The notes under the pieces: model-generated
Database searches by the model: none
What the model was told of the DNA's origin: nothing
Seen by the model: the letters and a program-made list of their open reading frames with translations, nothing else
In this document: piece after piece, positions 47,113 to 53,789 of the stretch
Numbering within the stretch: position 1 is the first letter of the stretch
Layout: every line of letters starts with the position of its first letter
Position numbers and translations under genes: made by a program
Assembly: GCA_002189035.1 (NCBI GenBank)
Contig: NEEC01000011.1
Span: 1,426,001 to 1,490,000, forward strand
DNA: 64,000 nucleotides
Origin: Utricularia gibba
Taxonomy: Eukaryota > Plantae > Magnoliophyta
Reading direction: 5' to 3'

Positions 47113-48117
47113 CTATCCATGTGGGTTGGCGTGGGTGGCGGTAGAATTTGGGCTTTCGGGGGCTTCGGCGGCTTTGGGATCGAAGTATTTGAACGACGCG
47201 GTGGTTCGTCCGCCGCCGTCACTCGCCACTTTGGGCGATTGCATCGAGAAAGCTCGCCGGAATATTATCCAACGCTGTGAGGGTCTCTGGCTGGACCTCG
47301 CGCCGCCGCGGCTGCTGTCTTCGCCGCTTCTGAAACCCCTTGCGGAATCGCCGGCGTAACCTCGGGCTGTGTTGAACATGGATCTCTCCATCACCTCCTT
47401 CTTCATCCCCTCCGGCAATCTCAGAGTAAACCGATCTAGATCGCCCAGTTGAAGAACCAGAGAGTGCCCCGTGGTGTGGGATCTGAAATTAGGCAAACGG
47501 TTTGGGGTTTGGGAAGTGGCGTTTCCATTTGCGTCTATCTGTACGGCGATTTCACCGTTTCGCGAACCAATGCGATTGTTCTCCGGCGGCTGTAAAGGTG
47601 GCGCTTGGGCGGGTTGGGTCAAATCCGCCCGGCATACAGGGCAAGTAGTGTGTTGTGCGAGCCACGCGTCGATGCACTCCGGGTGAAAAACATGATCGCA
47701 ATGAGGCAGCAAACGCAAGGTATCATCCTCCACAAATTCGTTCAGACAAACGGCGCACTCCAGAGCGCCTTTTCCGATCTTGTGCTCCTTCACCTCGGAG
47801 TAGGAGAAAGTGGGGAGCCCCACGATTATCTCATCATCCAGTCCCCGCGCTGCCGCCGCACCGCGCCGGGTCCCCATCGAAACACCTCTTCGGGTCCCGC
47901 CGACTGAAACATGGGCGTCGTTGCAGCGGCGGAGGTAGACCGAGCAGACGGCCATGAAGAAAAGCGCTCCCACGAGAGCAATCATGATGCTCGCCATGGG
48001 CGGATTGAACTGCGCCAAGTTATACGGGTTATCGGTGAACCCCCCGCCACCGGTCTGAGCGTCGACGAGATCCCCTACGAATGCAGCGATCACGAGACAT
48101 CTCGCCGCCAATCCCAT
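47113..48117 (-). CDS. ATL-family RING-H2 E3 ubiquitin ligase (ATL6/ATL31-like), intronless (334 aa)
   Basis: Signal plus TM segment, GLD motif, RING-H2 CAVCLNEF...LLPHCDHVFHPECIDAWL..HTTCPVCR, and RSHTTGHS / DRFTLRLP motifs. Confidence 0.95.
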   Translation of the reverse strand: MGLAARCLVIAAFVGDLVDAQTGGGGFTDNPYNLAQFNPPMASIMIALVGALFFMAVCSVYLRRCNDAHVSVGGTRRGVSMGTRRGAAAARGLDDEIIVGLPTFSYSEVKEHKIGKGALECAVCLNEFVEDDTLRLLPHCDHVFHPECIDAWLAQHTTCPVCRADLTQPAQAPPLQPPENNRIGSRNGEIAVQIDANGNATSQTPNRLPNFRSHTTGHSLVLQLGDLDRFTLRLPEGMKKEVMERSMFNTARGYAGDSARGFRSGEDSSRGGARSSQRPSQRWIIFRRAFSMQSPKVASDGGGRTTASFKYFDPKAAEAPESPNSTATHANPHG

Positions 48118-48927: not shown

Positions 48928-51061
48928 GGGTTAATTAGTATTTTACATGTGTCAGAGTTTTTTATTTGCAATTTACGGGAACTTTTTTTCTAATTTGTAA
49001 ATTACCTTACTTTTTTATTTGTATTTGCAAAATGCCTTAGATTTTAGGTCTAAATTTGGTAAATACATGTAATGCAGGATATAGGTTGACAATATACCTT
49101 AACTTTTTGTTTTATTGGTATTTTACATAGGTTATAATTTTTCATTTGCAATTTATCGGAACTTTTTGTTCTAATTTGTAAATTACTTATTTTTTTATTT
49201 TTCTTTATAAATTGACTTAGATCTAGAAATTCATTTATACAATAATGCGAAAATAAGTTTAATATTACAAATTATATATTTTGTTTTATAAAATTTCATA
49301 TTTTTTTATATTTATATAATACCCTAATTTTTATTTTTGATTTATAAAATACCATATTTTAATTAAATTCTAATTACTATTTAAATTACAATTATTATAT
49401 AATAATAAAAACTTACTTTAAATTAATATTGAATTCCTAATTTAATATAGTTATAAAATATTTAATAATTCACTTTTTAAAAAATGTTTCCAGACACTGT
49501 ATCGTGTGCTAGCAGTGTCCGGAAATTTCCAGGCTCTGCAACCACGCGATGTAGTGCCTGGAAATAATATGTAACAATATTAAAAAAAATTTCTAGACAT
49601 TTTCAAGACACTGCTAGCACACCATGCAATATCTGGAAATAATATGTTAAAAAATGTTTCCAGACATTGCATCGCGTGCTAGCAGTGTCCGGAAATTTAC
49701 AGGCTTTGCAACCATGCGATGCAGTGCCTGGAAATAATATGTAACCATATTAAAAAAAAAATTCTAGACATTTTCCAGACACTGCTAGCACACCATGCAG
49801 TGTCTGGAAATAATATGTAACCATATTAAAAAAAATTCTAGACATTTTCCAGACACTGCTAGCACACCATGCAGTGTCTGGAAATAATATGTAACCATAT
49901 TAAAAAATGTTTCCAGACACTGCATCGCGTGCTAGTAGTGTTCGGAAATTTCCAAGCTCTGCAACCACGCGATGCAGTGCCTAGAAATAATATGTAACCA
50001 TATTAAAAAAATTTTCTAGACATTACAATCACGCCAACTAGCAGTGTCTGGAATTTTCAGACACTCATAAGAAACGAAGTAGTGTTTGGAAGGACTTATT
50101 TTTTATTTTATTTTTTGCATAGTTATCATAATTTATAATATTATATTTTTTTATTTATAAAACACTATTAAGGTTTATAGAAGTTATAAAAATTATTATT
50201 AAATTATGTGGTTTATATAAAAAAAATCTATACAAATAGTTGTTATATTCAATAAAAGAGTGGTTGAATGTACAATTATTCAATTCATCATTCTTATGTT
50301 TGAGTAGAATTATCAACGAAAATTTTTTTTTCATATATTTAAATATTGGAATACTTTGTTTAACTTATATTTGTTAAAAAATTTATATAGGTGTATGAAA
50401 ATATATGAAATTGGTTAAAACCTAATTTAGAATACCCTAAACCCTATTCCCTAATTTGATAACCATAAATTTATTTTAAGCACGAAAATCATTTTGCAAA
50501 TATATATTAATTAAAAGAATGTTAACATGTAATATTTCAAAATAATATACATACAAGTAATACAATAGTTTTATCATATTTTTGATTATGTAATACAATG
50601 ATTATAATCATAAAATATTATATTATTTCGTATATAACTTATATAATTTATTATATTACATTTTTATAAAAATTTTTAAATAGTTTAATAGTATAGGTTT
50701 CTTAATATCATTATTAATAATAAATTTTATTATTTAATATAATTTTAAAAACATTATACTTCATATTCTTTTGTTTTTGTGTAAAAATCATTTTCTTCAA
50801 CATTTCAACATAAAAGAATATACCCATCATGAGTTTTTTTTATTTAAAAAATAAGAAGTCCGATATTTTGCGAATGAAAACTAAGATTATATGTAATTTT
50901 ACAATAAAAAAAAACTTTCATTATTTTGCAAATAAATGTAGTCTAACACAAGTATTTATCAAATTTTGACTTGTAATACCTGTAAAATACTAATAAAATA
51001 AAAAGTTCCGGTATTTTGCAAACATATTTATTCTGACACATGTATTTAACAAATTTAGCCC
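48928..51061. mobile_element. Complete non-autonomous Mutator-like element (2134 bp) with TIRs and a 9-bp TSD
   Basis: Left end GGGTTAATTAGTATTTTACATGTGTCAGA...TTTGCAATTTACGGGAACTTTT versus reverse complement of the right end GGGCTAAATTTGTTAAATACATGTGTCAGA...TTTGCAAAATACCGGAACTTTT. Flanks CGATTGCAA (48919-48927) and CGATTGCAC (51062-51070). No ORF. Confidence 0.85.
49481..50075. repeat. Tandem array of palindromic ~100-bp (A) and ~68-bp (B) units inside the MULE
   Basis: Unit order is about A-B-A-B-B-A. Each unit carries TTTCCAGACACTGC...GCAGTG(T/C)CTGGAAA inverted arms plus an ATAATATGTAACCATATT(A)n spacer. Confidence 0.92.
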
Positions 51062-51354
51062 CGATTGCACAACTCCACCAGCACAGAACAAATGAGTGGG
51101 GCCCACTTGCTCATGGGAGATGGTGACATGGCATGGCAACTATTTCGAACTGCCTGGAAATGCGTATCCGATTTCGGGCGATGGTGACAACATTTGGGGA
51201 TAAATGAATATAGGAAATAAAGATTTACAGTTAAAATGAAAATGAAACCCACCAGGAGAAGGAGACCAGCGATGTCAAGAGTTACCATACAATCCCTCCT
51301 TTTTCATTTTAGTAACAAGTGTTGATGAATGCATAACTCTGAGTCATCCTCTAT

Positions 51355-51839
51355 GTACTTGTTAGTGTGGTAAAATTGCACATACTCCATCCAAATTCCA
51401 AAAAAGAAATGCTTTTTCATGAGTAGATAGCTCTTCCCTTGACTGTTTTCAGGTTTCATCCCACTGAAACAGGTAGGTGATCCAAGGCTGCCTGCAGCAG
51501 CAGCCTGGCAGATAGCTGCTGGGTTACCATTGCTTCTAATTTGAGCTTCTTTCAAACACTCTCTTGTGGTTGTCGTTCTCACAGGTGCCTCGATGATCAC
51601 GAGGAGGACGACACCCACAAGGAGTGTTTGAAAGAAGCTCTTGGGGAACAAGTTAGAAGCCATAGTAACAGCGCAGCTATCCGCCAGACTGCTGCTGCAG
51701 GCAGCCTTGGATCACCTACCTGTTTCAGTGGGATGAAACCTGAAAACACTGTCAAGGGAAGAGCTAGCTACATATGAAAAATGATTTCTTTTTTGGAATT
51801 TGGATGGAGTATCTGCAATTTTACCACACTAACAAGTAC
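51355..51839. ncRNA. Long inverted repeat (485 nt fold-back); candidate hairpin-siRNA or young MIRNA locus
   Basis: Arms 51355-~51590 and ~51600-51839 are reverse complements, including a 60-bp perfect duplex (51444-51503 with 51689-51748). Transcription is not shown by the sequence. Confidence 0.55.
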
Positions 51840-52301
51840 GGAAGCTGGTCTTTCTGATGCAGACTGTATCTGCCCACGGATATGTATAGAAATATGTAAC
51901 GAGTAATGAGATGTAGAAAGGATATTCTTCTGGATGGCGAATCAGTTCAGCAGCAGCATCTGCAGGAATGCTCACTGCTCTTTTTCCCTTGTGGACTGTA
52001 CCTGGTTCTGGTTCCTTGCCCAAACTCTGGATTCTTCCCATTTGCTCCATGTCGAGGAGTTGCTCTTTTGCTGTGGCATCAATTAACCCTTGCAAAACTT
52101 CGAAAAGATCAACACCAAGTGAAGACATCAACAATATATAAAGAACATTAGGCATTCCAATGAAACACAGAGATCAATATAACCAGATGATGCTCAATGA
52201 TTGTAGTTGTAATCCAGAGGGATTCTGCCTCCCAATGCTAAGTGATTGTATTTGTAAGTGATCCTAATCAATTTGTGTGCAGAAAATCACTAGCACTATT
52301 T

Positions 52302-53789
52302 CTAGAGTTTCATGTCATCGCCATCCTCATCCTCATGACGAGCTTCCGCAGCAGCGATTTCGGAATCCAGCATGTTGATCATATTCCCACTTAGATGTTT
52401 TGCAACAGACACCATGTCAAGAATCACGCTTGGATCCAAACCCGCACCCCCTCTTTTCATCAACCCACATACACGTCCATCTTTGTTGACAGAAATCGAC
52501 ACAGCACAACTCATTTCAGATTCCTCTTCCCCTGTAGCGTCCACTATGTAATGCCTGCCAACCTGAAATGCAATCAATAATTCAGCAGTGCGTCACGATT
52601 ACTAATTGGAAAAGATGAGGGAGATGATAGAGTGCCTTCGTTAATGTGATCAAGAAAGGGATCCTGCTTGTGTCAAATTGTAGGAACTCTTCATCACTGA
52701 CGTCAACTTCTGGCTGCTCATCATGAGCGGCAATGGCTGTCACTTGCACTTTTGGTATTGCAGTATTGCTGAGCGCTGCCTGGTAGGGAAAACCAAACAA
52801 CAGAACACACACTCTTTGCTTCAGTTCAGATTTTTTTTTTTTTTCAGATGGTTAAATAAGCACTCTCGATCAAGGCTAATACCATGTGCATACCTTGATA
52901 GCAGCCGCCAAGGCATCCAGTACATTGCCATCAGAGCTAACAACAAGAGAATCAATATAAAGATCCCAACAGATCTTCCCCTTTACAATGGACAGAGACA
53001 AGAGATCGATTCCAGATCCTGATGAAAACACCCCAAAAAGAAACAAAACTAACTAAAGTGGGACCATCACAGCCTAACTTTGAGCAACACAAGATTGGTT
53101 CAGTTCATAAGTACCTGACCCACGTTTACCACCCAGCAAGCAATGTTCAAGTGCTGAACAGAGCTCGCTTGATAACTGCTCCCCGCCTCTTCCCTGCGTT
53201 ATGAAGTTACAAGAAAATCTTACAAATCGAGATCAGTATAGATTTAATATCACATGCACATGGTAACGATGAAGTTTTTTTCTTTTGTTTTTTTTTTTAA
53301 CCTCATATGTTGGCTCAGCAGTGGGGCTGCATTCAACATGAATATGAACACTTCCTTCATCTGGATGAGACGGCTTTGGTTTTCCAAGTTCAGCCTGTAA
53401 AATTAAATTGATGAATGAACAAAATACAAACAGGGTTTCTAAAAAAAATAGACAGAAATCCAAAGACTCAAGAGCTACGCTGGACAAAGATTTCACAGGA
53501 AACCTAATCACGACCCTTCATTAACTAAACTACCTTCACAGTTGCAATGACTTCAGTTGACCCCAACTTGACTCTTGCTGAACCACTTGCCTTATCATTG
53601 CCAGAATAGATTAGTAAACATAAGGTTTGTGGATAAACGAAATTAGCACTCAAAATTTCATACCTGCGGTATGACACCCGTCTCAACAAAAATGGGGCGA
53701 TATGTATATCGTTTGCGACCATCATTACGAAGATCCTGAGCGATGCCACCTTTTATAAAGTTCAGCTCTCCATAAGAAAGTCCCACCAT
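52302..53789 (-). CDS. RRP42: Exosome complex RNase PH-like subunit RRP42, 7 coding exons, last intron GC-AG
   Basis: MVGLSYGELNFIKGGIAQDLRNDGR, GSARVKLG, CSPTAEPTYEGRGGE, CWDLYIDSLVVSSDGN, AALSNTAIPKV and VGRHYIVDAT...LDPSVILDMVSVAK. Confidence 0.95.

Follow-up and report, generated by a model that had tools for sequence, protein, structure and literature searches.

Endogenous inverted-repeat (endoIR) loci of plants give rise, through DCL2, DCL3, and DCL4, to siRNA populations and are suspected to be starting points of MIR genes; they are expected to be RDR-independent, and DCL1 assists in the excision of stem-loops from such repeats (PMC10827316). For example, Arabidopsis IR71, which measures about 3 kb, and IR2039 are endoIR-siRNA loci built as long, near-perfect, non-coding hairpins encoded by the genome. 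At the level of DNA, fold-back priming at short inverted repeats gives rise to spacer-poor palindromes in yeast and mammals. For MIRNA loci, the 2018 criteria of Axtell and Meyers reportedly call for a modest fold-back precursor (about 300 nt or less) and are said to require, in two or more libraries, one dominant and precisely processed miRNA/miRNA* duplex bearing 3′ overhangs of 2 nt. Most plant pre-miRNAs are indeed under 300 nt (PMC7924660). MIR161 and MIR163 exemplify the inverted-duplication architecture, with extended complementarity between arms that are reportedly recognizable as similar to their target genes (Allen et al., 2004, cited in PMC10827316). Polymorphic inverted repeats located near Arabidopsis genes give rise to 24-nt siRNAs and alter methylation, chromatin loops, and the expression of neighboring genes (bioRxiv 10.1101/2022.07.05.498814; PMC10827316). 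In Utricularia gibba, DCL3 is truncated, 24-nt siRNAs are scarce, and the small-RNA pool is dominated by 21-nt species (PMC8333044).

Here, we analyze a fold-back located within a 64-kb stretch of U. gibba DNA (the window) next to the gene encoding the exosome subunit RRP42. A preliminary description had proposed it as a hairpin RNA (hpRNA) or young MIRNA locus that arose from an existing gene family by inverted duplication.

Anatomy and folding of the inverted repeat

The inverted repeat covers 485 nt (51355-51839) and consists of a left arm of 241 nt (51355-51595) pairing with a right arm of 244 nt (51596-51839), as seen both in the alignment and in the predicted fold; the right arm adjoins the RRP42 3′ UTR and is spanned by a contig (51559-52390) from the DNA run X8. 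In a gapped alignment of the two arms, 215 of the 231 aligned positions are identical, the 16 mismatches comprising 6 transitions and 10 transversions, and there are four indel events of 2, 9, 1, and 8 nt, of which the 9-nt bulge maps to the right arm (51641-51649) and the 8-nt bulge to the left arm (51580-51587). This corresponds to a stem of ~240 bp that is 93% paired. The longest perfect duplex is a 60-bp core formed by 51444-51503 with 51689-51748, and 31-mers common to both arms occur only within it; the core lies exactly where the preliminary description had put it, as does the fold-back as a whole. Further perfect runs measure 26 bp (51355-51380), again as described, and 29 bp (51382-51410), where 30 bp had been claimed. 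At the tip (51588-51604), which is apparent from both sequence and fold, a 5-bp stem, CCTCG/CGAGG (51588-51592 with 51600-51604), closes a 7-nt loop, ATGATCA (51593-51599), in keeping with the small terminal loop previously placed near 51592-51598. The structure is a palindrome nearly without spacer, and formation of the fold-back could have been primed at its tip, itself a short natural palindrome.

The minimum free energy of the RNA is -367.6 kcal/mol for the plus strand and -373.7 kcal/mol for the minus strand, as compared with about -133 ± 6 kcal/mol for shuffled sequences (z = -40 and -42, respectively), so that folding shows no strand preference, the count of wobble pairs also being three on either strand. 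The GC content of the hairpin (45-47%) resembles that of the neighboring genes, as had been noted, and differs from the 13-21% of the AT-rich spacer on its left (50000-51050). The borders read CTCTAT, GTAC...GTAC, GGAAGC, the outermost 4 bp of the stem being the palindromic GTAC. Apart from this GTAC, which also lengthens the stem, no target-site duplication was found at the borders, in agreement with the preliminary description, and no diagnostic microhomology was found at the outer junctions.

Presence and copy number in independent DNA samples

Logan contigs of two DNA runs (X8 and X12) and of the RNA runs X1 and X2 were placed on positions 50700-53700 of the window, and copy number was assessed as the summed k-mer depth of sequences at ≥90% likeness. 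Contigs of X8 cover 51284-51461 and 51559-52390 with zero differences, whereas X12, which represents a different accession (13 of 1,872 flank positions differ from the window), contributes contigs at 51355-51443 and 51422-51771, the latter crossing the loop. False palindromes can arise in long-read assemblies when an adapter is missed, but the arms here are only 93% alike, and in two samples other than the assembled one, short-read contigs extend across the loop and both borders. An assembly artefact is therefore virtually inconceivable, and this reading was dropped.

In terms of copy number, the hairpin is present at or below single copy and has no second copy at ≥90% likeness, its k-mer depth being 10-31 against 44.6 for the flanks in X12 and 1.3-5.7 against 3.4-5.7 in X8. 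A match of the arms to a high-copy fold-back transposon had been fixed in advance as an outcome that would refute the preliminary reading; since neither DNA run shows more than single-copy depth, such an element is excluded at ≥90% likeness.

The left junction varies between samples. DNA depth in X12 is zero at 51104-51305, one X12 contig begins exactly at the left border of the hairpin (51355), and in the RNA run X1 positions 51155-51259 are replaced by ACG; together, these observations suggest a structural polymorphism at this junction.

These data bear on whether the hairpin could be a non-autonomous fold-back or MITE-like transposon that inserted downstream of RRP42 and split an older, longer 3′ UTR. 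Fold-back elements typically consist of full-length inverted repeats closed by a tiny loop, GC-normal sequence lies on both sides (51060-51354 and 51840-52301), the GTAC at either end could be taken for a duplication of 4 bp, and the X12 contig start at 51355 together with the interval of zero depth at 51104-51305 suggests a polymorphic left junction. Nevertheless, we regard such an insertion as unlikely, given the single-copy or lower depth in two DNA runs, the lack of any other copy or fragment of the hairpin in the 64-kb window, where other repeats were readily detected, the palindromic nature of GTAC, which simply extends the stem, and the finding of neither a transposase remnant nor a known terminal motif. 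Of the features that define fold-back and MITE families, dispersed copies (at ≥90% likeness by depth, and within the window) and a flanking target-site duplication are both missing.

Age and decay of the stem

The arms have diverged by 6.9%, or 7.3% after Jukes-Cantor correction. The six transition mismatches translate into three G:U wobbles per strand, an equality that offers no indication of an RNA structure being selected on one strand. The perfect core of the reference carries three substitutions in X12 (51450, 51466, and 51485); of these, 51466 and 51485 face unaltered partners, leaving both uncompensated, and the partner of 51450 falls near a contig end. Conversely, four mismatches or indels of the reference (51504, 51528, 51570, and AG at 51443) are paired in X12. 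The mismatches thus differ between the two accessions, each lineage gathering its own. Between the accessions, the hairpin differs at 12 of 350 positions (3.4%) and the flanks at 13 of 1,872 (0.7%), a 5-fold excess (P = 1.4e-4) that suggests palindrome-associated mutation or conversion. If rates were equal in both comparisons, the duplication would have only about twice the age of the split between the two accessions. Under uniform decay, a perfect run as long as 60 bp would nominally be improbable (P = 0.036), although the run is not conserved in X12. Damage is heaviest toward the center, with eight mismatches and three indel events in the inner third of the arm against two and one in the middle third. 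The equal wobble counts, the uncompensated changes in X12, and the central clustering of damage fit neutral decay of the fold-back, whereas the long perfect run and the excess divergence between accessions speak against this reading.

The genomic neighborhood

The right neighbor, on the minus strand, is a spliced gene for an exosome subunit of the RNase-PH type, the last coding exon of which (52302-52561, with the stop codon at 52302-52304) is supported by a Pfam match to PF03725 (RNase_PH_C), by splice joints, and by translation. The splice joints were taken from RNA contigs, and the joined exons translate without stops. When three exons are summed, human RRP42 gives the best score and RRP43 and RRP45 rank lower, as the earlier assignment had it, and judging from these similarities, RRP42 appears a reasonable name for the gene. 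Its stop codon lies 463 nt from the hairpin, matching the ~460 bp previously given. The interval between them (51840-52301, minus strand) is the RRP42 3′ UTR, as delimited by assembled mRNAs ending at 51837 (run X2) and 51843 (run X1). Beyond the gene, a block of normal GC content extends over 51060-52301, with the hairpin inside it, and includes a left flank (51060-51354) to which a low-depth RNA contig of X1 maps. A Pfam scan of the ORFs in the arms and of a 108-amino acid ORF in the RRP42 UTR returned no match. A 16-nt deletion polymorphism at 52239, within the 3′ UTR, is common to RNA run X1 and DNA run X12, as are SNPs including those at 52102, 52162, and 52347, and the public data therefore contain at least two haplotypes or accessions of the locus.

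On the left, the GC-normal block is bounded by an AT-rich block (50700-51060; also 49047-49127) present at ~4 times the single-copy k-mer depth in X12, the depth over 50700-51100 being 150-196. It contains two 61-nt direct copies that are 80% alike (50906-50966 and 50996-51056). Because an X8 contig departs at 51060 into other sequence, we consider this block to be a dispersed repeat. At a distance of 250 nt from the hairpin, still within the left flank, the motif GTGGGGCCCAC (51095-51106) is presumably a site II or TGGGCC-like promoter element; should it drive transcription of the plus strand, transcription through the hairpin could converge with that of RRP42.

To the left of the AT-rich repeated block, a single-exon ORF of 334 amino acids (47113-48117, minus strand) is of the ATL RING-H2 type. 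Its best homologues are from Salvia, Sesamum, and Paulownia, at ≤50% identity, with Genlisea at 46-47%, all of them in Lamiales or Solanales; by these comparisons the ORF would encode an ATL RING-H2 E3 ligase of a fast-evolving lineage, the identity being this low even to homologues of the same order. An exact look-up showed that the protein itself is not on record, and the protein collection contains none from this lineage. Positions 49474-50024, some 1.4 kb upstream of this ORF, are occupied by ~50-nt units (TTTCCAGACACTGCTAGCACACCATGCAGTGTCTGGAAATAATATGTAA) that alternate in orientation, are 79-86% complementary, and recur with tandem periods of 74, 170, and 253 nt. The array has the appearance of a cluster of MITE-like or palindromic repeats.

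Transcripts at the stem bases

The RNA runs X1 and X2 come from different studies. The spliced RRP42 contig of X2 (1,496 nt) matches the window with zero differences and ends at 51837, and that of X1 (1,333 nt), which derives from another accession, ends at 51843, so that both mRNA ends fall within ~5 nt of the right stem base. On the far side of the hairpin, X1 also contains a left-flank contig of 192 nt at a depth of 5.4, compared with 45 for RRP42, which covers 51060-51154 and 51260-51348 and hence carries the 105-nt deletion variant (51155-51259). It ends at 51348, 7 nt before the left stem base. This contig could represent an independent transcript or the product of a paralogue; on one side it has 6 differences in 95 nt, and the contigs are strandless. 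Carry-over of DNA into X1 is unlikely because the RRP42 introns have zero depth there.

No RNA contig of X1 or X2 lies inside the hairpin. Since the arms share 31-mers only in the 60-bp core, an assembler working at k = 31 could run ~90 nt into an arm, as the DNA contigs do, and the RNA ends at the stem bases are therefore not assembly breaks; an assembler break as their cause was rejected on this ground. The sequence at the RRP42 RNA end includes an A-rich AGAAAG 15 nt upstream, and the end itself falls at UA. For a poly(A) site placed randomly in the ~460-nt UTR, we estimate the chance of such a coincidence at ~2-3%, which hints at a causal link beyond a purely passive model.

Three explanations fit the RNA ends: an ordinary poly(A) site at about 51840 combined with about 10% read-through; excision of the stem from read-through RNA by a Dicer-like activity; or technical loss, as long perfect duplexes resist fragmentation and reverse transcription. 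In terms of function, the stem might act in cis, setting or enforcing the 3′ end of RRP42 or marking read-through RNA for dicing, and could in this way couple the output of an exosome subunit to RNA surveillance. Such an action would account for RNA ends (51837, 51843, and 51348) that all lie within 7 nt of the stem bases in two runs, and for the failure of any contig to enter the stem despite unique 31-mers that would allow it, and DCL1 has been reported to help excise stem-loops of endogenous inverted repeats (PMC10827316). However, identical ends would result from an ordinary poly(A) site located just before the repeat or from a failure of reverse transcription and fragmentation on long perfect duplexes, and the stem is decaying and differs between accessions; on balance, a cis-acting role is quite unlikely. 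A more specific version, in which the hairpin is a sensor, RRP42 transcripts that evade normal 3′-end formation adopt the duplex, and a Dicer-like or RNase III-like enzyme cleaves them at the stem base, the sharp ends being its footprint, is highly improbable; if it were true, RRP42 output would respond to the RNA-surveillance and silencing capacity of the cell.

As for read-through of RRP42 on the minus strand as a source of double-stranded RNA, this proposal of the preliminary description is plausible insofar as the RRP42 contigs reach the stem base and low-level RNA is found on the far side, although these contigs are strandless and none of the RNA enters the stem. With regard to transcription of both arms on one RNA, the contigs reach the two stem bases (51837/51843 and 51348), with none within the stem.

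Search for a donor gene, relatives, and RNA families

On the minus strand, an ORF of 119 codons is open through the left arm, and the remaining frames carry stops. A search of 1.84 billion protein representatives with the 96-amino acid translation of the arm gave no match at E ≤ 0.001, and Pfam gave none either. Within the 64-kb window, blastn (word sizes 7-11) and six-frame tblastn returned only matches at the level of chance, and the search by arm BLASTN that had been suggested for finding the donor family likewise turned up nothing similar there. With no protein match, no similar DNA or translation in the window, and no extra DNA depth, the derivation of the arms from an existing gene elsewhere is not supported, and the inverted-duplication route from a gene family to a young MIRNA, as it had been envisaged, is left without a donor among the proteins, in the window, or by depth at ≥90% likeness. 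Most simply, the donor would be one of the arms, the sequence downstream of RRP42 having undergone a local inverted duplication.

No Rfam family was detected in the whole window at gathering score, in line with the earlier failure to recognize a conserved miRNA; at a permissive threshold, only generic hairpin matches appeared, with scores of ≤32 bits where 56-200 are required and symmetric on both strands. We also tiled the core, less its outermost repetitive 5-6 bases, with 12 10-mers, none of which occurs on either strand in 1,998 of 13,673 ShortStack clusters (PMC8333044), a comparison covering 15% of them.

The donor searches bear on the proposal that the hairpin is a working hpRNA or proto-MIRNA locus whose small RNAs silence a related gene family in trans, having arisen by the inverted-duplication route. 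The long near-perfect hairpin of genic GC content, the 119-codon frame through the left arm, the 60-bp core that is nominally longer than expected (P = 0.036), and the transcribed flanks would all agree with it. We nonetheless hold it to be very unlikely, because the arm peptide has no homologue among the 1.84 billion representatives, neither a donor in the window nor a second copy by depth at ≥90% likeness was found, the core is broken without compensation in X12, wobble pairs show no strand bias, and 485 nt is well above the usual size of plant pre-miRNAs, most of which are <300 nt (PMC7924660).

Discussion

Our analyses indicate that the fold-back downstream of RRP42 is probably a young, single-copy inverted duplication of local origin that immediately follows the 3′ end of the gene, and a possible source of endogenous inverted-repeat siRNAs through read-through transcription. 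Judging from its anatomy, fold-back priming or template switching at CCTCG-ATGATCA-CGAGG may have copied ~240 bp of neighboring sequence in reverse, in which case one arm would be the donor. The central palindrome and the mismatches and indels of the inner third fit fold-back priming followed by decay near the center. In this respect, the locus is similar to the spacer-poor palindromes of yeast and mammals, sharing with them a 7-nt spacer on a short natural palindrome and a concentration of indels and mismatches near the center, whereas the mechanism here is deduced from anatomy and the outer junctions offer only GTAC.

By anatomy, the hairpin fits the endoIR/hpRNA class, with a genome-encoded duplex of ~240 bp that is 93% paired. 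It resembles Arabidopsis IR71 and IR2039 in being long, near-perfect, non-coding, and encoded by the genome; on the other hand, its stem measures about 0.24 kb against about 3 kb for IR71, and it differs from the Arabidopsis endoIR loci in having no identifiable promoter of its own, so that its transcription would depend on read-through from RRP42. It is also like the gene-proximal inverted repeats described by Arce et al. in lying <0.5 kb from a protein-coding gene and in varying between accessions, but those repeats are mostly derived from transposons, whereas the present hairpin is single copy and carries no transposon signature.

The case for a MIRNA is weak, as the hairpin exceeds what is expected of a MIRNA precursor in both length and perfection and lacks an identifiable target. 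Its 485 nt exceed the limit of about 300 nt, and its arms are not like an existing gene, as judged from proteins, the window, and DNA depth. With MIR161 and MIR163 it shares the inverted-duplication architecture and extended arm complementarity; unlike for these loci, no donor or target was found for it, and it is longer and more perfect than an annotated MIRNA precursor.

Under the preferred reading of a local inverted duplication, most RRP42 transcripts, to judge from the assembled mRNAs, end at the right stem base, and a minority appear to read through. The read-through RNA would fold into a near-perfect duplex of ~240 bp, a predicted substrate for DCL4, DCL2, and DCL3, with DCL1 possibly helping to excise the stem, and dicing would yield a population of siRNAs rather than one miRNA. 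Because DCL3 is truncated and 24-nt siRNAs are scarce in this species, the 24-nt/RdDM route would be weak, and, the small-RNA pool being dominated by 21-nt species, mainly 21-22-nt products are predicted. As no second copy of the sequence was found in the window or by depth at ≥90% likeness, these siRNAs would have no obvious target in trans. Most likely, the hairpin has no selected function, and at present it amounts to an ordinary structural variant, albeit one that has regulatory potential.

Of the new observations, the one of greatest interest is that all three contig ends, those of the two RRP42 mRNAs and that of the left-flank contig, lie near the stem bases. From an evolutionary point of view, if small RNAs do arise from this hairpin, the locus would provide a cleanly datable example of how a raw inverted duplication sets out to become an siRNA or MIRNA locus, in a setting that is single copy, not derived from a transposon, variable between accessions, and located in a very compact plant genome. 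In addition, the coincidence of the RRP42 mRNA end with the stem base provides a natural test of the effect of a long hairpin on 3′-end formation and read-through.
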